NCBI GenBank assembly: GCA_028023455.1
Contig: JAQFVV010000006.1
Location: 6,262,001 to 6,326,000, forward strand
Reading direction: 5' to 3'
Length of the DNA: 64,000 bases
Source of the DNA: Epiperipatus broadwayi
Taxonomy: Eukaryota > Animalia > Onychophora
Both the position numbers and the translations under genes were made by a program. Below the pieces are notes generated by a model that saw only the letters and a list, made by a program, of their open reading frames with translations, had not been told where the DNA came from and did no database searches. This document shows, in pieces, positions 1,084 through 63,290 of this stretch; position 1 is the stretch's first letter; the number at the start of each line of letters is the position of its first letter.

Positions 1084-1124
1084 CGCTATGAATACAAGGC
1101 AAACGGCCTCGAAAGCACTTAGTG
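1084..1124 (+). ncRNA. Hammerhead variant with A3/U8 core (family D-like)
   Basis: CGCT-ATGAATA-C-AAGGC-AAACG-GCCTC-GAAA-GCAC-TT^-AGTG; stems I and II pair, with CpG-decay-type mismatches. Confidence 0.65.
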
Positions 1125-5952: not shown

Positions 5953-7467
5953 ATAGTAAAATATTTTTTTAATGCAAGCTAAAAGTTTTACGAAATTTAA
6001 GAATATTTCTTTTAAATATAAAAGTAAACTGTGGACTCATTTGTCTATAGAAATATGCCACTCACCTCTACTATAATGACGGCTACATTACATTACGATC
6101 ATTTTTATTTTATTACTAGTGCATTAACATTTATTTGACCAACGTTGATTAACTTGAGAACTGTATCATTCAATTAAGAATAGCTAGGCACTCATTTACC
6201 GACTGTTTGATAGATAGAATGTCCAGCCTCGAAGCTGGATATCTGAAAGTAAAATTCTAAACTTATTTGGACTGGAATTGAATTCCAAGTTGTCACCATG
6301 ATAAATGGATACTAACCATTATTCTATGAGACATTTATAATCTTTGTTTATCGTATAATTAAATGTGTAACATTGTTCCACTACAAATCGAAATTTCAAA
6401 TATTCCCTCAAGGAAGAATATTCAAGGAAAGAGCATAACTCAGGTGCCTGAATTGATAGGTAATTAATGATGGTATAATTTAAATAGATTTTCATCTTCG
6501 ATTTAATTTTTGGAAACACAGCAAAATAACTTGCTTACTTATCAATATTGGATGATTAACCAATTGACTCTATGCGGGCTTATTGAAAAAGAACCCAAGT
6601 CTTATTAGAAACCGAAAAAATTCGTGAGCTTTTTGCAAGCCCGAATTCAAACTTATGTCATAAATATGGCAGGCGGATATAATATCACTGCACCATGAAT
6701 ATATCATATGCATAAATGAACTAATAAATAACCCACACACGAGTCTATTATATAATATTTTACAAACTTGAAACTTTTATCTGAAATAATTTTATATTTA
6801 CATGTTTAAGAACTCGTTGAGATATAAATAACTTGATTATTCGTATTTAGCATCTTTACAATTTACCTTATAATAACCTCTCTAAAAAATTTGCTCATTT
6901 ATAAATGACAGCTTTATATTTCATTTCTTGCTTTAAATACCCTCTCCTCTTCAGAATTTCTTTCTCTGCTGGTTGCAGTGTCTGAAGTTTTTGTACTAAT
7001 TTTAATTTCATTCACTTCGGAGTTCAGAGTTTTTAAGTGGTTTGTTAATAGTAGGTGAAAATAAAATAGTAACTTAATTTAGAAATGGCGAATTTCTTAG
7101 TAGTTAAAGCTATAGCATGGAATCGGTCATTAATGAGCTTAATTTAGATTAGTAGCTATAAAAAGCTCTTAGCAAATACGAATTTTATGTAAAACATTTT
7201 GTATTGTAAAACGTTTGGTTTAAATTACATAAATATTCTTTTATAAGAAGAACTATAGTAACAAAAATTCTAACGTCCTTTTTTTTATTTTACGCCTTAA
7301 CTGTTATCATTATCGTAAACAATTACAGGCCCTACAATAACAATTAACCCTTAAGATATCAACAATCTCAACTTGCAGTCAAGCTTAAGGGTTGATTGTT
7401 ATCATATACATTTATAAAACCTATTAAAGCCTTGAGGAATTGGCTTTATTGCCTTAATATACTTATA

Positions 7468-8136
7468 ATATATAAGGTATATGAGCAAAGACTTTCACAC
7501 GACCCACCATTCTCCACACTATCTCATAACACTGATACACTTGAACCCATATATGTTGAAAAGATAAATAATCACCAATATATGTATTTCATGCTAAACC
7601 AGCAATCATCAGTTGGTCCAGATTACTATATCCACGTATATATGCTATAAGTGCTCAGATATATATTAAGATAGCCAAACCTCATACTTTAATGGACAGG
7701 CTTCAATCTACTCCACACTCCAACTCTTCAACTGTCCATCCAATTGAAAATCTGATGATGGAATGCTCAAAGTCCACCCTGAGGCCGAGATTCTTAACAA
7801 TCATCAGATTTTCAATTGGATGGACGGTTGAAGAGTTGGAGTTTGGAGTATATTGAAGCCTGTCCATTAAAGTATGAGGTTTGGCTATCTTAATATATGT
7901 CTGAACACTTATAGCATATATGTATAGAGATGGTAATCTAAACCAACTGATGATTGCTGTTTTAGCATGAAATACTTATATTGGGGATTATTTATCTTTT
8001 CAACATATATGTGTTCAAGTGTATCAGTGTTATAAGATAGTGTGGAGAGTGGTGGGTCGTGTGAAAGTCTATGCTCATATACCCTATATATTACATATAT
8101 AGACACAGGTATATAATAAGCCTGTGTGTTTCAGTT
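7468..8136. mobile_element. Family A twin-arm insertion, 15-bp TSD, hammerheads at 7569-7625 (-) and 7934-7990 (+)
   Basis: TSD cttaatatacttata at 7453-7467 and 8137-8151; arms ~7468-7796 and ~7801-8136 are inverted copies. Confidence 0.9.
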
Positions 8137-8499
8137 CTTAATATACTTATATAAGTATGGCCCTTGTGCAAAAAAAAAAAAAAAGGAAATATTAGTCATT
8201 TAAAAAAACATGAAACTCTATAAATAAATATAAAGATATTCATTATATGAATAATATTTCGTAATGTAATTTACTATACCACTCTCACGCAAATTAGGGA
8301 CCGATTTCTATCTGCTTTTAATACCTTGTGGAGGGATGTAATCACAAACATATGACCAAAGACATGAAAAAGATGCAAGAACCATCACTTGCCAGTTGGC
8401 CCAGATCACAATTTCTTACATATATCTTCATCATTGTTGTATAATGAAATATTACAGTTTAATTGATGACATAAACCATTTAATGGAAATATATTAATA

Positions 8500-9119: not shown

Positions 9120-9443
9120 GTAAGGATAAATCAAGGATAAATCCATTGATTGTATTATGGTGAGACTAGAGCCTCTCTGTCCACTAGGCTATCTCAACAC
9201 ACTTATTCTTATAATAAAGCTTTGGTGGACACTGCTCATAGTTCAGTTTTTGTGCAGCACCGCACTTCAGCTGGGCATGATTGTCAACCGGGAAATCCAG
9301 TAGTGGTGTGCAGAGAGCAGCATGATCTAAAAAGAAAAAGAAAAGCAGCTTTCTTTATATCTACAGATGGCGATGCCATCAATAGAAAAGACTTGCTACA
9401 AAATATCCAAGAAATGGAATGCGTAATCATTTCATTTGCATAA
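9120..9443 (+). pseudogene. Decayed Penelope-like GIY-YIG endonuclease fragment
   Basis: YYGETRASLSTRLSQH...SSVFVQH..SAGH...NPVVVCREQH..KRK.KAAFFI....AINR matches the PLE pattern YIGET.RSL..R..EH...S.L..H....GH...EA..I....NR; upstream GIY-CxxC segment is missing. Confidence 0.8.
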
Positions 9444-16946: not shown

Positions 16947-17335
16947 GCCATTACAAAGATTGCCAATTGTCAGATGATAAGAACATGGAGACCAATAGCT
17001 AAGAATTTCTGGATATTAATTTCCTGATCAAAAGATATGGTAAACTAGGTTGGGTATGAGTCAGGTACATTAAAAAAATTAGTCGTTATCATTGGAATCT
17101 AAAATAAAAAAGCTTTCAAATTATACAGTCTGGATGAGAATTCCAGCATATGACTGACTTTTATATTATATATTTACAAGTTTAATTGGTTGATTTAACT
17201 TTTTTTTTTTTTAAGATTTAATGTAAATTAAACAAAAGATGTTAGCGGTATGGGAAAAAAAATGTTGGGAACCACTCAGCCTGCTGGCAAGTTGCATTTC
17301 TAAAGTGTACAAAATAAATTAAAGTATTAATAAAG

Positions 17336-17792
17336 TATATAATTGTTAATTAGAGAAGATATTAATTAGTATTAAAGTTTATCGGCTTAACGTTTTCGAG
17401 GATCCATGCCTCATATTCATAGCCTTCATAAAATGTATAATAAAATATGCAAATACAAATATTCAAATAAGCTAGCATTACGTAGCCCATTTCTTCGAGA
17501 TCTCGAAGCAAGTATCCTTTCTATTAATGGCATGGATGTTTCCATTGATGTAAAATGCCTTCTTCCATGCCATTAATAGAAAGGATACTTGCTTCGAGAT
17601 CTCGAAGAAATGGGCTACGTAATACTAGCTTATTTGAATATTTGTATTTGCATATTTTATTATACATTTTATGAAGGCTATGAATATGAGGCATGGATCC
17701 TCGAAAACGTTAAGCCGATAAACTTTAATACTAATTAATATCTTCTCTAATTAACAATTATATATTTTACATATAGTGAGAAGTAAAGCTAT
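17336..17792. mobile_element. Family D very young twin-arm insertion: 201-bp arms (1 mismatch), 27-nt spacer, 14-bp TSD
   Basis: Arms 17336-17536 and 17564-17764; right arm extends 28 nt further; TSD aagtattaataaag at 17322-17335 and 17793-17806. Confidence 0.92.
17668..17722 (+). ncRNA. Type-I hammerhead, A3-U8 core variant (mirror copy at 17378-17432, -)
   Basis: TTTAT-GAA-GGCT-ATGAATA-T-GAGG-CATGGAT-CCTC-GAAA-ACGT-TA^-AGCC-G-ATAAA; perfect stems I and II, palindromic stem III AACGTT. Confidence 0.8.
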
Positions 17793-18526
17793 AAGTATTA
17801 ATAAAGCTAAATTTAAAATTTTAAATATACATGTTATATTTGATAAATAAGTTATATATAGGTAGGTATAGTTTTTTCTATAAATAAAATCCATATTTTG
17901 TTGTGAATTTGACAGGTTATGGACAATAGACGAAGTATAGATTTTATAAAAGATTATTTGTTGGAGAGCTCGCTGAATAAAAAAAAATCTGAGGGTGTTA
18001 CAGTAAAGCGATACTGACAAACATATTCAGACAACAGACAAAATAGAAATTTTATATATAAGGATTATTTCATATGAGCACATTACGTATGCAGCAAAAA
18101 TATTTACATTTAAACCCATCAAATAGATACAGTCAATACAATGTCGGCACACATTCAATAATTTTGTTTGAATTAAATAAAATTGATTGAATAATTTGTT
18201 CCGTACCCTACAATTTTAATGACTGGTTTATTTGTTATTTATATAAAAATATTTATTTATTTAAAATGTAATTACCAGTTTTTCAAAAAAAAAATTGTGT
18301 TTGTTTTAAAAAAGATTAAATAGGAAATTTTGTTAATGCTAAAATAATTTGTCAAAATTAGTTTACTTAAAATCGGGGGGGGGGGGGGACAAATTAATTT
18401 GCATTAAAAATCACGAAAGTTTAATTAATTGCAAAAAGAGAGAAAGAGAAAGCCAAAGAATAAAAAGTTAAAAACAAAAAAAAGAGAAAATATAGATTGA
18501 ATTGTTATATGTATAATACCACTAAA

Positions 18527-27489: not shown

Positions 27490-28020
27490 AAATAGAATTT
27501 TATATAATATTACAATTAAAAACAAAATTTTACTAAAATTCATCTACAAACATGTTTTCATCTATTATCAAATAGACTTTTTCAAGCAAAATTCAAAATA
27601 AACGTATAACATATATATACAAAACCAAATAGCCTTCCCATCATTCACTTCAAAAATTAACTTCCTTTAACTTCAAATATCTTCACGAGACTAATGGCCT
27701 CAGGTTCAAAAAATGTTATCATCAAAATCAATCAAAGGATGTCTTTATGAGATTATGCCTCAGATTCAAAAAATTTTATCTCAAAGTTACTTTCACAATA
27801 AATTTTTTTGAATCTGAGACCATAAATCTCAGGAAGACATCCGTTGATGATAAAGGAAGTTAGTTTTTGAAGTGAATGATGGGATATATGTTGTATGTTG
27901 AGTTGAATTTCATCTGAAAAGGTATATTTGTTAATAGAAGAAATAATGGTTGAAGAAACATTTTAGTAAAATTGTTGTTTTTTTTGGTTAGTATTGTAAT
28001 GTTATACGCATTTCTATTAT
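27490..28020. mobile_element. Family I twin-arm element, no ribozyme recognised (second copy ~56360-56680)
   Basis: cccatcattcacttcaaaaattaacttccttta inverted with taaaggaagttagtttttgaagtgaatgatggg; outer arms aattttactaaaa / ttttagtaaaatt. Confidence 0.7.
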
Positions 28021-32907: not shown

Positions 32908-34179
32908 ACTGAAACACAGGCTTGTTATATACCTGTGGCTATATATATGTAATATAGGGTATATGAGCACAGACTTTCACACCACCCACCACTCTCTACT
33001 CTATCTAATAACACTGATACACCTAAACACATATATGCTGAAAAGATAAATAATCACCAATATACGTATTTCATGCTAAACCAGCAATCATCAGTTGGTC
33101 CAGACTATCATCTTTACACACATATACAGTATAAGTGCTCAGATATATATTGAGATAGACTATCCTCATATTTTAATGGACAGGCTTCAATCCACTCCAC
33201 ACTCCAACTCTTCAACCGTCCATCCAATTGAAAATCTGATGATGGAATGCTCAAAGGCCACCCTGTGTTTCGGTTATTACATTATAGAGATGTCTGCCCA
33301 TCCTTGCATATGTATTAAATGGATTATGTCCTGTACATGTGGGATTCAGATTGACCTTAGGTCAACATGGGTGTGACAATAATCTCAGCCTCAGGGTGGC
33401 CTTTGAGCATTCCATCATCAGATTTTCAATTGGATGGACGGTTGAAGAGTTGGAGTGTGGAGTGGATTGAAGCCTGTCCATTAAAATATGAGGATAGTCT
33501 ATCTCAATATATATCTGAGCACTTATACTGTATATGTGTGTAAAGATGATAGTCTGGACCAACTGATGATTGCTGGTTTAGCATGAAATACGTATATTGG
33601 TGATTATTTATCTTTTCAGCATATATGTGTTTAGGTGTATCAGTGTTATTAGATAGAGTGGAGAAAGGTGGGTGGTGTGAAAGTCTGTGCTCATATACCC
33701 TATATTACATATATATAGCCACAGGTATATAACAAGCCTGTGTTTCAGTTATTACATTATAGAGATGTCTGCCCATCCTTGCATATATATTAAATGGATT
33801 ATGTCCTGTACATGTGAGGTTCAGATTGACCTTAGGTCAACATGGGTGTGACAATAATCTCAGCCTCAGGGTGGCCTTTGAGCATTCCATCAGATTTTCA
33901 ATTGGATGGACGGTTGAAGAGTTGAAGTGTGGAGTGGATTGACGCCTGTCCATTAAAATATGAGGATAGTCTATCTCAATATATATCTGAGCACTTATAC
34001 TGTATATGTGTGTAAAGATGATAGTCTGGACCAACTGATGATTGCTGGTTTAGCATGAAATACGTATATTGGTGATTATTTATCTTTTCAGCATATATGT
34101 GTTTAGGTGTATCAGTGTTATTAGATAGAGTGGAGAGAGGTGGGTGGTGTGAAAGTCTGTGCTCATATACCTTATATTA
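32908..34179. mobile_element. Family A composite insertion: antisense arm plus head-to-tail sense dimer, 14-bp TSD, three intact hammerheads (33051-33108 -, 33550-33606 +, 34022-34078 +)
   Basis: TSD tatattatttcata at 32894-32907 and 34180-34193; 475-bp period (33262 vs 33737); HHR TAGTC-TGG-ACCAA-CTGATGA-TTGCTGGTTTAGCAT-GAAA-TACGTA-TA^-TTGGT-GATTA. Confidence 0.93.
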
Positions 34180-53909: not shown

Positions 53910-54686
53910 CAAAATAAGAGTCATAGATCACATGACCCTATATCTTAAGCTTGTAAGTTATAAACAATGAGGATTGCCAATTCCTCTACAAGCTTTATGA
54001 TAAATGCTTAGCCAGAGCCAGCACTTAAAATATCTGTCAGGAACCCCTCCCCAAACCCCTGACAATGGTTTCGTGCTTTGGCACTCCTCAGAGAGGTGTC
54101 AGGGTAGGTTCAGACACTAGATCTAAAAATACCAATCCAAAGCCAAGCACTTAACTAAAAGTTATTTATTGAGTGGAAAATCTGAAATTTTCGGACATCT
54201 ACATGTCTTCGAACCCAGCTATCCAACTCAAATACCTATATGGGGCTGATAGATCTTCAGCCATACCATATATTAGTAGTCTTAGCAATATAAAATTATA
54301 TAAGCCTTATGGCAGAGACTATAAATAGTCAAAATAAGAGTCATAGATCACATGACCATATCTCTTATACTTGTAAGTTATAAACAATGAGGATTGCCAA
54401 TTCCTCTACAAGCTTTATGATGTTTAGCCAGAGCCAGCACTTAAAATATCTCTGTCAGGGACCCTCCCCAAACCCCTGACCATGGTTTTGTGCTTTGGCA
54501 CTCCTCAGAGAGGGGTGCTAGGGTAGGTTCAGACACCAGATCTAAAAATACCAACCCAAAGTCAGCATTTAACTAAACGTTATCTATTGAGTGGAAAATC
54601 TTAAATTTTCAGACATCTACATGTCTTCAAACCCGCTATCCAACATTTATTATAAAGCTTGTAGAGGAATTGGCAATCCTCATTGT
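53910..54686. mobile_element. Family C2 insertion: head-to-tail dimer (420-bp unit, -) plus 38-bp inverted arm, 13-bp TSD; hammerheads at 54055-54097 and 54472-54514 (-)
   Basis: TSD atatatcaatatt at 53897-53909 and 54687-54699; ACCTCT-CTGAGGA-GTGC-CAAA-GCAC-GAAA-CCATTG-TC^-AGGGGT is fully canonical; the second copy has G12>A. Confidence 0.93.
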
Positions 54687-57310: not shown

Positions 57311-57505
57311 AGACATCACTCTCATGAAAATGATGTTTTTGAATTGAATGATGGAAACATTTTATTTTGTATATATCTTGTTGAAATTCACTTGAAAAGG
57401 ACTATTTATTAATAGGTGAATTCATGGTCATGGAAGGATTTTAATTTTAAAAAAATTGTTTTTGCATAGTATTGCAATGTTGTATGATTTTCTATTATAT
57501 ATATT

Positions 57506-57818
57506 AATTATAAATATGCGACTTTTTTCGCATGCGTTAGTGAAGCTATAATTATACTTAAAATAATGTTTAATAGGTCTGCTTAGCGCTTTCGATTTAA
57601 TGTTCGAATCTCATACTCATAGCTTTGTGATTGAAGTTTGTTGTGATTTATTGTACACATATGCAAATAAGTTTGAATATTTAATTAGTCCGTTATTTAG
57701 AGAGAGCAAAGCATGCCTCTCTTCTATTATTTTAAGTATAATTATAGCTTCACTAACGCATGCGAAAAAAGTCGCATATTTATAATTACAATTTTTATTA
57801 GTGAAGAGAAAAACAATT
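57506..57818. mobile_element. Family D2 young twin-arm insertion (63-bp perfect inverted arms), 13-bp TSD, A3/U8 hammerhead variant at 57581-57623 (-)
   Basis: Arms 57505-57567 and 57726-57788; TSD tattatatatatt at 57493-57505 and 57819-57831; GCT-ATGAGTA-T-GAGATTCGAACATTAAATC-GAAA-GCGC-TA^-AGC. Confidence 0.8.
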
Positions 57819-58689
57819 TATTATATATATTGTAATGGTGGTTCCCTCCTACCGACTCTATATTTGGTTGATCCTATGCTATCTGAACGAAACCTATCAT
57901 TTATAAAATAATGAGATGGCCTTACTGTAGCTATTGATCTGGAGAAAAGTTCTTTTAAAACTCATCTCCCATAAGAAAAAAATATACATACAATGATATA
58001 GGGATATACATACTCTGCATTAATCTTTCCAAATCTCTCATCAATATTCATCGATCAACATATTTATGGACCTCAGTATAATGTGATTCCAAGCACTAAT
58101 CCTATGGTTTACATAAGTGACAGATTAATAAGATTGATGATAGTGTACTAATGGGAAGCCTGACCCTACCTAGTTCACTCAGGGCACGTAGCATTTAAAC
58201 TGACAGAGACATGTTAATACAGAGTATATCGCACTAAACTATTTGAAAAAGCATACATATATTTTGAATAAATGATAACTATATTTATATTATAATATAT
58301 ATATATATGATTGTTAAATATTTTGTTTGGAATATTGTCTTATATGTAGCAGAATTATGGCCTATTAAAAAAATGGCATAAAAAAAACACAAAGCTTGGA
58401 TGAAAAAGGAAAAAAATTTAAGTTGTAATGAAAAATGACAGAAATGCAGGTCTTAAAAAAAAATATCACTTTTTGGAAAAAGTATAAAGAGAATGTGAAA
58501 TTAGTTTGCAAATAGTTAAAAGCAGAACTTTTAAAGATGAGTTGGAAGGAAAAAGTGTAGAAGAACAAAGAAGTTGAATAATGATCTTAAAAAAGAGGAA
58601 TTATGAAGTTTGAAAAATAAAGCAGGAGACAAAAAAGCTTGAAGAATATAGTCTGGCATAATATGTGGAGACCCCAAATTTAACAGCTA

Positions 58690-60739: not shown

Positions 60740-63290
60740 TTTTTTACAGAAACAAAAAATGAATATAAAAAAGAATTAATAGTGATGTAGGAAAATATAA
60801 TTGTGAATTAACAAGAGAAGCTATAGAAACGAATGAACATATCACAAGTATAAAACAACATCTTGGTATTGGTAAATTACAAGTGTAAAACAACATCTTG
60901 GTGTTGGTAGGAAACTTATTTATACAATAAGAAGTAAAGAAGAAACTATTACTTTTAAAAAAAAAGAAAGATGACATCATGATATGTATGGAAGAATTCT
61001 ATAAAGAAATATACTAATAAAAAGCAAGAAAACAAAGTATCATCAACAATTATTATATCCTCTAAATTGTCCAGCACTTTAAATGAAGAAGAAACACATG
61101 AAATTAAATCTATGAAGAAGTGAAAAACTCCAGGAAATGATGGAATTTTAAAAGAAGCAAATGAAATAGAAAAAGTAGTCAGCAAAGGGGTATCTCAAAT
61201 ATCTAAATGATAAACATGCATCAAATGATTGAAATAATGCAGCAATAATATTGATATTTAAGAAAGGTCTTATAGAAGTCATTAGAAATTATGGACCTAT
61301 CGATCTTTTATCAGTCCTATACAAAATTTTACAAACATATTTACAACTCATCTACAGGGAACTTTGGATTTAACCAACCAAAAAAGCATGCTCTATTTAA
61401 AAATGGTCCTAGTATACTGAATCAAATCCATGTACTGAGAAAGTTATAGAAATGTCCCATAAATATGGGTAGCCATTATGCTTTGGATTTATAGATTATG
61501 AAAAGGCATTTGATTCTATAAGAATTTCTACAATACTACATGGTCACCATTCTTTATGCTTAGACAAGCTGTTTACACACAGGCTAAACTGTCAATATAT
61601 GTGTCACTCAGTGCAAGCCAGAGTAATCAATGGATACAAGAAGGTTTGTGTACAAAATCCCTATCTAGTGCCTACTCATCCAATATCCCCCCGACAAGTT
61701 TCTAGCTTGTGGATTTCATCAGTGAGGAGCCTTGGATCTGAGAGCACTGCACCTAGATCTTAAGATCTAATGCAACCCTCCAGCTGCAATCTTTTACCAT
61801 TATTAGCCAACTATAAAGCTTTGGGTTCAAAATGAAAACAATAATGTTTTCAATTCAAGCTCATCAACCTGTATAGTCTATAGATCTGAACTCAGTTCAT
61901 CATCCATATTTTTTGGTGTCTTTGATTCTTTATATTCACAGTCAACTTAATATTAGGATTGTTATTAAAGAACCAAAGATGCCAAAAAGTATGGATGCTG
62001 AACTGAGTTCAGATCTATAGACTATACAGGCTGATGAGCTTGAATTGAAAACATTATAATGTTTTCATTTTGGACTCAAAGCTTTATAGTAAAGGTAGCT
62101 GGTGATGGGTTGCATTAAAACCTAAGATCTAGATGCAGTGCTCTCAGATCCAAGGCTCCTCGCTGATGAAATCCCCAAGCTAAAAACTAGTCTGGAGATA
62201 GATATTGGATAAATAGGCACTAGACAGGGTTTTAGGCACAAACCTTCTTTCATCCATTGATTATTCTAGCTTGCACCGAATGGCTTTACTGTATGGAGAG
62301 TTTAACTCTGTGTAATTTCTACAATAATTAAAACATTGGATCATCAAGATACAGACCCTGTATATTGTTATACTCTAAAGAATATCAAATGCAACAGTAA
62401 TTTTTAAATTACATAGAACTAATAAGGTCAATAGTGAGAAGGGTGTGTGGCAAGGTGATTCCATATCTCCAAAATCTTTTTCCACACTTTTACCAAATGT
62501 ATTTTGTGAATTAAAATGGTAAGATAAGGAAATAAAAATTAATGGAAGATGTTTAAGTCATCTAGATTCTGTAGATGACAATTATTTTTTTGCAAATAAT
62601 GGTTCAGAGCTTCAGAAATCGTGCAAGAATCTTCAGTTGAAAGTAGAAACTTAAATACTAAAAAGACTAAAGTAACATTGTGGATTTTCAAAGAAGAAAA
62701 TAAGGATTGATAGCAATGAATTAGAAGATTGACAATTACAAATACCTTGCTCAGATTATCAATACAGGTGGAAACATAATGGATGAAATTAATCGTGGAA
62801 TTTAATTGGATGGAGAACTTTAGGTAGAAAAGACTTAATATCAAAAGGAAGAGGTCTATGTGTTTGAAAAGGAAAGTTTTTAATAGATGTCTTTTGCCAG
62901 TTTTTATTTATGAATCTGAATCTTGGACTTTTAAAAGAAGAGCACAATAGAGACTTGACATATGTCAGGAGTAACAAGAAGGGATCGAAAATGAAATACA
63001 TGGATAAGAGAACAAGCAGCATCATGTCAATCATTGAAAAGGATTATGAGATTGAAAATGAAACTGGTCTGGAAATGTTTCTAAAAGGGATGATAATAGA
63101 TGAATAGTTGAAATCTGAAGCTGTATCCTGAGAAATTGTAAAAAAATCTAGAAAGAGACCATGTGATGTAGTTGGATGAAATAAGATGCTCATTAGGTTA
63201 TGAGAATAGAGATAAGAGAAACTGAAATAAATTTGGAGATCTTTATCCTACAGGTCAATAATGATGGTAAATGATAGTGATGATGATGAA
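60740..63290 (+). pseudogene. RTE-clade LINE ORF2 (RT) relic, split by a family B insertion
   Basis: TPGNDG, IFKKG, NYGPIDLLS, DYEKAFDS (61495-61518), KGVWQGDSISP (62439-62471), SVDD (decayed FADD); (GAT)n tail ~63280; many frameshifts and stops. Confidence 0.9.
61536..62313. mobile_element. Family B twin-arm insertion, 13-bp TSD; hammerheads at 61678-61737 (-, core intact) and 62148-62210 (+, G12>A)
   Basis: TSD aatttctacaata at 61523-61535 and 62314-62326; removing the insert restores RTE colinearity. Confidence 0.92.

Follow-up and report, generated by a model that had tools for sequence, protein, structure and literature searches.

Does the insertion at 17322-17806 carry a natural hammerhead whose core C3-G8 pair has been exchanged for A3-U8, as was predicted from its letters, and what kind of element brought it there? 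The locus lies in a window of 64,000 nucleotides from Epiperipatus broadwayi (contig JAQFVV010000006.1, positions 6,262,001 to 6,326,000), which was analysed as a whole. In our view, 17322-17806 probably stems from one very recent event in which a Penelope-like element (PLE) was inserted in truncated form, retaining its last ~230 nt and bearing an A3-U8 minimal hammerhead motif. The parts of the insertion are as follows.

17322-17335: left target-site duplication (TSD) AAGTATTAATAAAG, an exact 14-nt direct repeat bordering the insertion
17336-17563, sense on the minus strand: left copy of the putative PLE 3' end, 228 nt, tailless
17478-17561, minus strand: mirror ORF end, 27 codons and a stop
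17564-17764, plus strand: right copy of the putative PLE 3' end, 201-nt portion common to the left copy
17564-17622, plus strand: putative PLE ORF end (...HAINRKDTCFEISKKWAT), stop at 17620-17622
17765-17792, plus strand: tail TTTTACATATAGTGAGAAGTAAAGCTAT of 28 nt, present on one side only (missing from the left copy) and forming the element's 3' terminus
17793-17806: right TSD AAGTATTAATAAAG, an exact 14-nt direct repeat, partner of 17322-17335

The whole right copy (17564-17792) comprises 229 nt, and the two inverted copies abut at 17563/17564. The left copy is the reverse complement of the right, with one mismatch in the 201 shared nucleotides (A at 17624 versus 17476, where the sense letter is G), and it reaches 27 nt further in the 5' direction; the 27-nt spacer of the inverted repeat, its apparent loop, belongs to this left copy. 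Other copies of the family span 17537-17563 and then extend beyond 17564 as a longer linear element. At the tail end, an independent copy in run X7 was identical to 17793 (0 differences) and diverged after it. Both arms depart from the majority of the family in the same way at 17623, 17625, and 17737 (shared minority letters), which points to a single insertion event. The right copy contains six CpGs, an observed/expected ratio of 1.27 versus 0.27 window-wide. When empty sites were compared, the flanks proved to be repeated themselves, and the sole near-fitting joint (17334>17809) contained 8 foreign letters. With its 14-bp TSD, arms alike at 200 of 201 positions, and intact CpGs, the insertion is as young as had been claimed, and arms and TSD were found in the sequence as given. 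The original prediction was right about these parts of the insertion; it missed the 28-nt one-sided tail and the Penelope-like twin nature of the whole.

In PLE insertions as described in PMC8557442, an inverted copy, itself 5'-truncated, lies next to the direct one, and one end bears a tail of 30-40 bp. Here, a 5'-truncated copy on the plus strand (17564-17792) lies beside an inverted 5'-truncated copy on the minus strand (17336-17563), and the tail is present at one end only (17765-17792), likewise at 57.8 kb and 8.1 kb of the window. The proposed PLE identity is supported by homology of the ORF tail to a GIY-YIG-like ORF fragment: the ORF-end peptide was identical in 9 of 15 residues (E = 9e-5) to the C-terminus of a 97-aa ORF at 9150-9443, with a DNA identity of 79% over 57 nt. 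In an Atlas feature search, the clusters nearest to this 97-aa ORF were eukaryotic GIY-YIG fragments; Pfam gave no GIY-YIG match in the fragment, and a word-based homologue search with it returned no matches. From a presumed ORF with RT and GIY-YIG parts, the insertion retains only the 27 terminal codons, followed by the 3' UTR, and no RT was found within the 64-kb window. A 45-aa ORF upstream of the motif was discarded as being in the wrong frame, with nothing found by HMMER among 1.84 billion proteins; the right frame was obtained through 9150-9443. The hammerhead-type motif starts 53 nt past the ORF stop codon and has the following parts.

17668-17722, plus strand: hammerhead-type motif of the right copy, all pairs of helix I, its extension, and helix II Watson-Crick
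17668-72 / 17718-22, plus strand: helix I extension
17676-79 / 17713-16, plus strand: helix I
17680-86, plus strand: core A3UGAAU8A9
17687, plus strand: extra U between A9 and G10.1
17688-91 / 17699-702, plus strand: helix II
17703-06, plus strand: G12AAA15.1
17706-11, plus strand: palindrome AACGUU (helix III)
17712, plus strand: A17, predicted cut at 17712/17713
17378-17432, minus strand: hammerhead-type motif of the left copy, core block 17384-17424, identical 41-mer
Between 17388 and 17387, minus strand: predicted cut of the left copy

The 41-nt motif reads GGCU-AUGAAUA-U-GAGG-CAUGGAU-CCUC-GAAA-ACGUU-A-AGCC and is located at 17676-17716 (plus strand) and 17384-17424 (minus strand). The conserved U4, G5, and A6, A9, G12, A13, and A14, the A15.1-U16.1 pair, and H17, which is A, are all present within 17680-17712. 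The CUGANGA identities C3 and G8 are absent, A3 being found at 17680 and U8 at 17685, and the two positions are still Watson-Crick complementary (A-U). Helix I consists of 4 bp, from which a GAA/G internal loop leads to an extension of 5 bp; helix II, also of 4 bp, ends in a 7-nt loop, and helix III is palindromic and formable only in a dimer. In published PLE minimal hammerheads, an extra nucleotide follows position 9, the 10.1-11.1 pair is G-C, and 15.2-16.2 is palindromic (PMC4209133). The present motif has the unpaired U17687 after A9 and G17688-C17702 as G10.1-C11.1. The claim of a complete hammerhead geometry around an A3-U8 core was borne out feature by feature, with every listed pair Watson-Crick; what had gone unrecognised is that the extra U17687, the palindromic helix III, and the pair of motifs on opposite strands are PLE hallmarks.

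Thermodynamic folding returned other structures. The minimum free energy structure of the monomer (-9.9 kcal/mol) is another fold, the hammerhead fold having -7.5 kcal/mol, and cofolding of the dimer did not return the double-hammerhead structure; such folding of monomer or dimer is uninformative for minimal hammerheads. The motif had been expected to escape standard searches, and it did: in a 700-nt search (17200-17900) with RF00163 and its clan, Rfam gave no hammerhead match even at E<=10, whereas a canonical minimal hammerhead at 54055-54097 in the same window scored 30 bits. A scan of the window at gathering thresholds likewise gave no hammerhead match on the element.

The motif belongs to a very high-copy family, in which the motif block forms the peak of k-mer depth. 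In run X1, the summed k-mer depth was highest at 17681-17716 (~1.1 million versus 0.1-0.3 million in the flanks), and contig breakpoints clustered at 17667/17673 and 17715/17716. In the RNA runs, analysed as assembled contigs, no pile-ups of begins or ends were reported. Family variants were taken from assembled contigs with a cut-off of 2%, and the DNA variants in the block among those listed (>=2%) were N7 A>U and two C>U changes creating G.U pairs. No substantial A3 or U8 variant, and hence no C3/G8, was among the family variants listed at this cut-off, so that the family consensus, on which the original prediction had staked its claim, gave no sign of a canonical core. The motif block was also found in runs of two other organisms, B and C. 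A metagenome scan with GGCTATGANTATGAG-N(6-25)-CGAAA yielded 120 loci; those inspected resembled chance matches in unrelated, apparently coding sequence, and in none of them was GAAA followed by a palindrome and helix I.

Within the window, the same core had been said to recur at 1088 and 57614-57620. The bare heptamer ATGAATA was observed 40 times, with 41 expected, and because it occurs at chance frequency its recurrence is no evidence; the locus at 57620 in fact reads AUGAGUA. The extended motif CTATGANTA-N(8-30)-CGAAA, in contrast, occurred 4 times in the window versus 0.03 expected, which identifies 1086-1114 and 57590-57622 as true diverged relatives. The relatives are thus real, although the heptamer argument for them was not sound. 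They belong to the following features.

1084-1124, plus strand: diverged relic of the motif, with AUGAAUA, C, helix II AGGC/GCCU, GAAA, and a hairpin helix III, without helix I
57505-57833, minus strand: twin insertion of greater age, from a related family (identity about 70%), TSD ATTATATATATT
57505-57736, sense on the minus strand: left copy of this relative, with AUGAGUA and the palindrome AGCGCU
57737 to ~57801, plus strand: right copy of this relative; a tail of ~32 nt, homologous to TTTTACATATAGTGAGAAGTAAAGCTAT, comes after it and has no counterpart at the other end

Watson-Crick pairing between positions 3 and 8 is retained in the relatives at 1088 and 57620. When copies of ~30% divergence were aligned three ways, the invariant columns were concentrated in GCUAUGA.UA and UCGAAA, the helix II loop was variable, and the motif was the best-conserved block. 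The shift of the helix III palindrome from AACGUU to AGCGCU is a double substitution. Helix I or helix II is defective in the relatives within the window, so the truly compensatory evidence is thin. These comparisons support the view that A3 and U8 are fixed across the huge family and its diverged relatives (among the variants listed, 2% cut-off), and A3-U8 would then be a conserved, high-copy variant of a known hammerhead type and a predicted ribozyme.

Conservation by itself cannot tell catalysis from binding, and the block might descend from a hammerhead but be catalytically inert, kept for another PLE role with A3 and U8 tolerated rather than selected as a pair. Such a role could be an RNA structure or sequence for RT/EN near the RT start sites, or part of a promoter in the terminal repeat; the block lies close to the two 3' ends (50-80 nt upstream), which is consistent with this. 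PLE hammerheads cleave weakly in vitro (PMC4209133) and are dispensable for insertion in vitro, which was unaffected by hammerhead mutation, and Anolis RNA-seq showed no ends at the cut site (PMC11167929); Naiad PLEs thrive without canonical hammerheads (PMC8557442). However, the conserved parts are exactly the two strands of the catalytic core plus helices of varying sequence, with G12, A13, A14, A9, U4-G5-A6, and the A15.1-U16.1/H17 site all retained. The 3-8 combination stays Watson-Crick, and the common variants keep pairing. When a full minimal-hammerhead descriptor with any N3/N8 allowed was applied, three independent loci in the window matched, far more than the 0.13 expected per simulated window, and 3/3 had a Watson-Crick 3-8 pair, the only combinations there to satisfy it. 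We therefore regard an inert block as a serious but rather unlikely alternative to a ribozyme.

A chance likeness to a hammerhead in an AT-rich foldback repeat is strongly disfavoured and, in our judgement, very improbable. It could draw on the chance frequency of the heptamer and on the lack of an Rfam match, and with about 0.017 A-U descriptor matches per simulated 64-kb window, a scan of a genome of >1500 windows would yield some by chance. Against this stand the excess of the extended motif (4 versus 0.03), the conservation of the block among diverged copies and its presence across organisms, an architecture and element position that a canonical hammerhead family in this genome shares, and the fit to PLE-specific hallmarks that lay outside the search behind the original prediction.

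It is hardly credible that the element is a DNA transposon (MITE or foldback) or a gene for a hairpin RNA of the miRNA/siRNA type and that the motif is irrelevant to it: the near-perfect inverted repeat between direct repeats, the fold energy of -337.5 kcal/mol, A>G changes in an RNA run that suggest dsRNA, and scores of generic miRNA-hairpin covariance models on the element would suit this reading, but those Rfam matches all fall under their gathering scores and are artefacts of a long hairpin, the ORF end lies inside the arms, other family copies run past the apparent loop as a longer linear element, and the one-sided 28-35-nt tail, unequal arms, and off-centre junction are PLE signatures (PMC8557442). 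The symmetric terminal inverted repeats and fixed TSD of a MITE are not found here, because the tail is one-sided and the TSD length differs among like insertions (14, 12, and 15 bp).

For the preferred reading, a truncated PLE, we propose the following course. The PLE endonuclease would have nicked the two target strands 14 bp apart, giving rise to the TSD, and the two 3' ends would have served as primers for reverse transcription, on templates of one family, from two alternative PLE start sites, of which one takes in the 28-nt tail and the other omits it. The two short cDNAs may then have been joined head to head at 17563/17564, so that each copy would consist of the end of an endonuclease ORF and a PLE minimal type-I hammerhead motif. 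Published work on PLE shows cleavage and extension of both strands and traces the tail to two RT start sites (PMC11167929). In source transcripts, full-length or tandem, two motifs might pair via AACGUU and undergo weak self-cleavage after A17, by analogy with known PLE hammerheads. The motifs at 17322-17806 themselves are passengers in a truncated, dead copy, and the predicted transcript of the insert is the ~200-bp hairpin of -337.5 kcal/mol rather than a ribozyme.

The wider proposal, that A3-U8 hammerheads are an active, naturally selected core variant of a mobile, high-copy PLE lineage with possibly tens of thousands of copies in several related species, has in our estimate an even chance of being correct. 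If true, hammerheads that pair purine 3 with pyrimidine 8 would for the first time be known as a natural class, and censuses based on CUGANGA would systematically undercount eukaryotic hammerheads; consensus- and Rfam-based searches overlook an entire high-copy lineage of candidate PLE hammerheads. Cleavage by the motif would be natural proof that positions 3 and 8 need complementarity only, even in the inverted purine/pyrimidine orientation, which is disfavoured in vitro in some ribozyme contexts. If the motif does not cleave, a ribozyme scaffold would have been kept for a non-catalytic role, which bears on what PLE hammerheads do. The locus is also a clean, nearly undecayed example of PLE twin priming and tail formation, a mechanism that has been reconstituted in vitro in recent work, and could serve to map the two RT start sites of a natural insertion. 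No report of a natural A3-U8 hammerhead was found in the searchable literature; an earlier description may exist elsewhere.

Among known systems, the PLE minimal type-I hammerheads (Cervera & de la Pena 2014, PMC4209133) resemble the present motif in their location in the terminal repeat or 3' region, in the unpaired nucleotide between A9 and G10.1, in G10.1-C11.1, in a palindromic helix III dependent on dimer formation, in frequent opposite-strand pairs 100-700 bp apart, and in thousands of copies per genome. They differ in that the published cores have C-G at 3-8 (with a U-A variant in schistosome Cercyon), compared to A-U here, and that helix II has 7-8 bp in the published schistosome motifs, compared to 4 bp and a 7-nt loop here. 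A further difference is that helix I of the present motif is prolonged, beyond a GAA/G internal loop, by an extension of 5 bp. Covariants at 3-8 are active in vitro, and natural U3-A8 covariation has already been published (Perreault et al. 2011, PMC3088659; Cercyon, PMC4209133); as here, the 3-8 pair is kept by a double change. Those covariants keep a pyrimidine at 3 and a purine at 8, an orientation that the present motif inverts (purine 3, pyrimidine 8). Przybilski and Hammann reportedly found in 2007 that this purine-3/pyrimidine-8 orientation is disfavoured in PLMVd-type contexts, and a 2017 study by Lunse, Weinberg, and Breaker is said to deal with PLE minimal type-I hammerheads as well.

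A canonical hammerhead family found elsewhere in this window and called family A (for example at 7947-7990 and 33563-33606) shares the layout of TSD, inverted truncated twin, and one-sided tail, as in its CUGAUGA insertion at 7453-8151, which has a TSD, inverted arms, and a one-sided tail of ~35 nt. It is also alike in the 4-bp helix I, the asymmetric internal loop and 5-bp extension, the palindromic helix III (AUACGUAU in family A), and cleavage after an A, which is predicted here. Family A differs in its CUGAUGA core and is an unrelated sequence family; it has U.U (or G.U, G-C) at 10.1-11.1, whereas the present motif has a one-sided extra nucleotide.

The complex insertions of PLE (Craig et al. 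2021, PMC8557442; Frangieh et al. 2024, PMC11167929) are alike in heavy 5' truncation, in an abutting inverted copy, and in a tail at one end, attributed to two RT initiation sites with both strands cleaved and extended. Here the RT/EN body is absent, what remains being the final 27 codons with the 3' UTR, and the tail of 28 nt is slightly shorter than the 30-40 bp quoted. Animal non-LTR retrozymes (Cervera & de la Pena 2020, PMC7229834) are likewise non-coding repeats, a few hundred nucleotides long, that are related to PLE and carry hammerheads. They are, however, direct tandem repeats with canonical type-I hammerheads, loop-loop contacts, and circular RNAs, whereas the present element has its motifs on opposite strands, contains no direct repeat of a unit, and is an inverted pair.

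In the insertion at 17322-17806, a long inverted repeat lies between perfectly matching 14-bp direct repeats (AAGTATTAATAAAG; 17322-17335 and 17793-17806). The inverted repeat was resolved by script into two copies of one element.

Copies within the insertion
17336-17563, sense on the minus strand: left copy, 228 nt
17564-17792, plus strand: right copy, 229 nt

The copies had 201 nt in common with a sole mismatch (A at 17624 versus 17476, G in sense), the apparent "loop" being 27 nt of extra 5' sequence in the left copy and the "tail" (TTTTACATATAGTGAGAAGTAAAGCTAT) 28 nt of extra 3' sequence in the right one. Contigs from public runs revealed that other family copies span 17537-17563 and then extend as a longer linear element, so the "loop" is a normal part of the element. 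An independent family copy showed no differences through 17793 and was divergent beyond, which fixes the 3' terminus of the element, tail included. The repeat, arms, target-site duplication (TSD) and motif of the original prediction were all present, and the proposed very young age of the insertion followed from the CpG content of the right copy (n=6, observed/expected 1.27, compared to 0.27 across the CpG-depleted window). The window has a GC content of about 29% and contains no ORF of at least 150 aa; its base composition suggests a genome that is heavily CpG-depleted and presumably methylated. This Penelope-like element (PLE) inserted within older repeats. Its flanks (17193-17254 and 17782-17843) are high-copy repeats (maximum depth 3x10^5, in 17193-17254). 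The target sequence, too, is repetitive, which precludes a clean empty-site test.

The family is of very high copy number, with thousands of matching contigs in the organism A DNA run and a summed k-mer depth of 10^5-10^6 compared to about 30 for single-copy contigs. In each copy an ORF terminates in ...KAFYINGNIHAINRKDTCFEISKKWAT (stop at 17620-17622, in the correct frame). This peptide was identical at 9 of 15 positions (E = 9e-5) to the C-terminus of a second ORF, whose region is 79% identical in DNA.

ORF related to the element
9150-9443, plus strand: 97-aa ORF (YYGETRASLSTRLSQH...), nearest Atlas clusters GIY-YIG fragments

These closest protein-atlas clusters are eukaryotic, chiefly arthropod; a Pfam search with the 97-aa ORF gave no match. 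The ORF is probably a decayed PLE endonuclease end. The sequence that follows its stop contains no counterpart to the hammerhead block's 5' half.

Each arm contained an identical 41-nt minimal type-I hammerhead-like motif (17676-17716, plus strand; 17384-17424, minus strand) with an A3-U8 core (AUGAAUA) and a predicted cut after A17 (17712). Every pair proposed for helix I, its extension and helix II was Watson-Crick; an additional U (17687), absent from the original description, was located between A9 and G10.1. Martick and Scott reportedly found in 2006 that the 2'-OH of residue 8 acts in catalysis, held in place by the 3-8 pair, which makes it chemically plausible that an A-U pair is compatible with catalysis. 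As predicted, standard models overlook the motif: the Rfam hammerhead models gave no match on the candidate in a 700-nt search, even at E ≤ 10. A3 makes the first core triplet AUG (17680-17682), and the resulting short frame, MNMRHGSSKTLSR followed by a stop, ends after 13 codons, with no evident coding role here. In the Anolis Poseidon element, the hammerhead is overlapped by the ORF start (PMC11167929).

When contigs of at least 80% likeness were compared across the family, summed depth reached a maximum of ~1.1 million over 17681-17716 compared to 0.1-0.3 million in the flanks, and contig breakpoints were concentrated at 17667/17673 and 17715/17716, which indicates a ~44-nt block common to many more subfamilies than its flanks. 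DNA variants listed within the block (at least 2%) were A>U at N7 (19%), a free position in hammerheads, and C17708>U (5%) and C17716>U (11%), each replacing G-C pairing by G.U. Among the variants listed, A3 and U8 had no substantial alternative and C3/G8 did not appear, so the refuting condition set in the original prediction, a C3/G8 family consensus, was not borne out. Near-identical copies were found in organism B runs, and organism C contigs contained an identical core 5' half or the 44-nt block alone.

These sequence data favour a candidate ribozyme, a PLE minimal hammerhead in a conserved A3-U8 form that was mobile recently, within a textbook PLE twin insertion (two inverted 5'-truncated copies joined head to head). 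The original interpretation is partly supported; its argument from recurrence of the bare core fails, the heptamer being at chance frequency (40 found, 41 expected). Two motifs carried by full-length or tandem source transcripts would pair via AACGUU, giving two active sites, and would cleave after A17. The main rival, which we consider unlikely, is an inert hammerhead-derived module retained for RT/EN recognition or another role; PLE hammerheads are weak and, in vitro, dispensable for insertion, and sequence conservation alone fits both readings.

Chance resemblance to a hammerhead appears highly improbable. A minimal-hammerhead descriptor (helix I ≥4, helix II ≥4, 0-1 spacer, GAAA, palindromic or short helix III, H17; N3/N8 free) matched three independent loci in the window, with 3-8 pairs A-U, C-G, and U-A, all Watson-Crick, where 0.13 matches were expected per simulated window (0.017 for A-U alone). 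The pattern CTATGANTA-N(8-30)-CGAAA was found 4 times versus 0.03 expected. Genuine PLE-type hammerheads exist in the window, with CUGANGA-N-GAAA at 27 occurrences versus 3.4 expected. In a three-way alignment of copies ~30% diverged, the invariant columns fell in GCUAUGA.UA and UCGAAA, the helix II loop was variable, and the helix III palindrome AACGUU at 17.6 kb corresponded to AGCGCU at 57.6 kb, a double change that preserves it. Both relatives are decayed (no helix I in the 1088 copy; a 2-bp helix II or 3-nt spacer in the 57620 copy), so this compensatory-change evidence is suggestive, not strong.

Other twin insertions and hammerhead-like loci in the window
7453-8151: canonical hammerhead twin insertion; 15-bp TSD (CTTAATATACTTATA), arms 302 nt at 92%, ~35-nt tail confined to the right end
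7612 (minus) and 7947 (plus): hammerheads of the 7453-8151 insertion, core CUGAUGA
27513-27986: old twin insertion, arms 76% complementary
~27540-27590, minus strand: hammerhead-like motif in the left copy of 27513-27986; U3-A8 core UUGAAAA, extra A, 7-bp helix II, GAAA, palindrome AACAUGUU
54055-54097, minus strand: minimal type-I hammerhead; Rfam Hammerhead_1, 30 bits, E = 5e-5
54472-54514, minus strand: minimal type-I hammerhead with G12 replaced by A (GCACAAAAC)
57505-57833: diverged relative of the A3-U8 family with like layout; 12-bp TSD, ~32-nt tail

A MITE or hairpin-gene reading of 17322-17806 is scarcely credible, and a MITE was rejected on the variable TSD length among like insertions and the one-sided tail. 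The canonical family of 7453-8151 has at least 12 copies in the window, many with U.U at 10.1-11.1, and the right copy of 27513-27986 has C3.A8 at the equivalent place. The hammerheads at 54055-54097 and 54472-54514 lie in direct orientation, 417 nt apart; the latter, with its G12 replacement, should be inactive. Further near-perfect hairpins at 397-609, 7693-7866, 27722-27858, and 61867-62031, which score on miRNA-hairpin models, are probably additional twin insertions.

The 17322-17806 copy is itself dead on arrival: it lacks RT, its motifs are on opposite strands, and a transcript across the insert would fold into a hairpin (predicted at -337.5 kcal/mol). In an RNA-labelled organism B run, 17564-17792 showed 24 A>G and 17 T>C sites at shares of 8-28%, affecting motif positions A3, A9, A13-A15.1, and A17, while the organism A DNA run and another organism B run, whose library type is not on record, showed no A>G and 3-4 T>C sites. 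This pattern is consistent with dsRNA formation and looks like ADAR-type A-to-I hyper-editing of foldback dsRNA on both strands. The arm difference 17624/17476 falls at a site with A>G in 22% of RNA-run depth, the DNA family having A; an edited RNA may have been the template for one arm, a single case and possibly a coincidence.

Published PLE insertions are marked by a TSD, by heavy truncation at the 5' end, by a second, inverted copy that is also 5'-truncated and directly adjoins the first, and by a tail of ~30 nt on one side only (PMC8557442), a signature that the insertion matched. A PLE protein studied in vitro cut both strands of the DNA and extended them, and its reverse transcription began at two adjacent internal sites, the interval between them being the tail (PMC11167929), which accounts for the twin-copy layout with a one-sided tail. 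PLE minimal hammerheads have a helix I of 4-5 bp, an extra unpaired nucleotide after position 9, a conserved G10.1-C11.1 pair, and palindromic positions 15.2-16.2, are dimer-dependent and weakly active in vitro, and frequently occur as opposite-strand pairs 100-700 bp apart (Cervera & de la Pena, PMC4209133). A natural U3-A8 variant has about 1,300 matches in Schistosoma (PMC4209133) and also appears in Perreault et al. (PMC3088659), a passage of which, citing Przybilski & Hammann 2007, describes 3-8 covariants as active in vitro. In the literature that could be searched, no published natural purine-3/pyrimidine-8 hammerhead was found. Compared to these published motifs, all features here are known except this purine-3/pyrimidine-8 orientation of the 3-8 pair.
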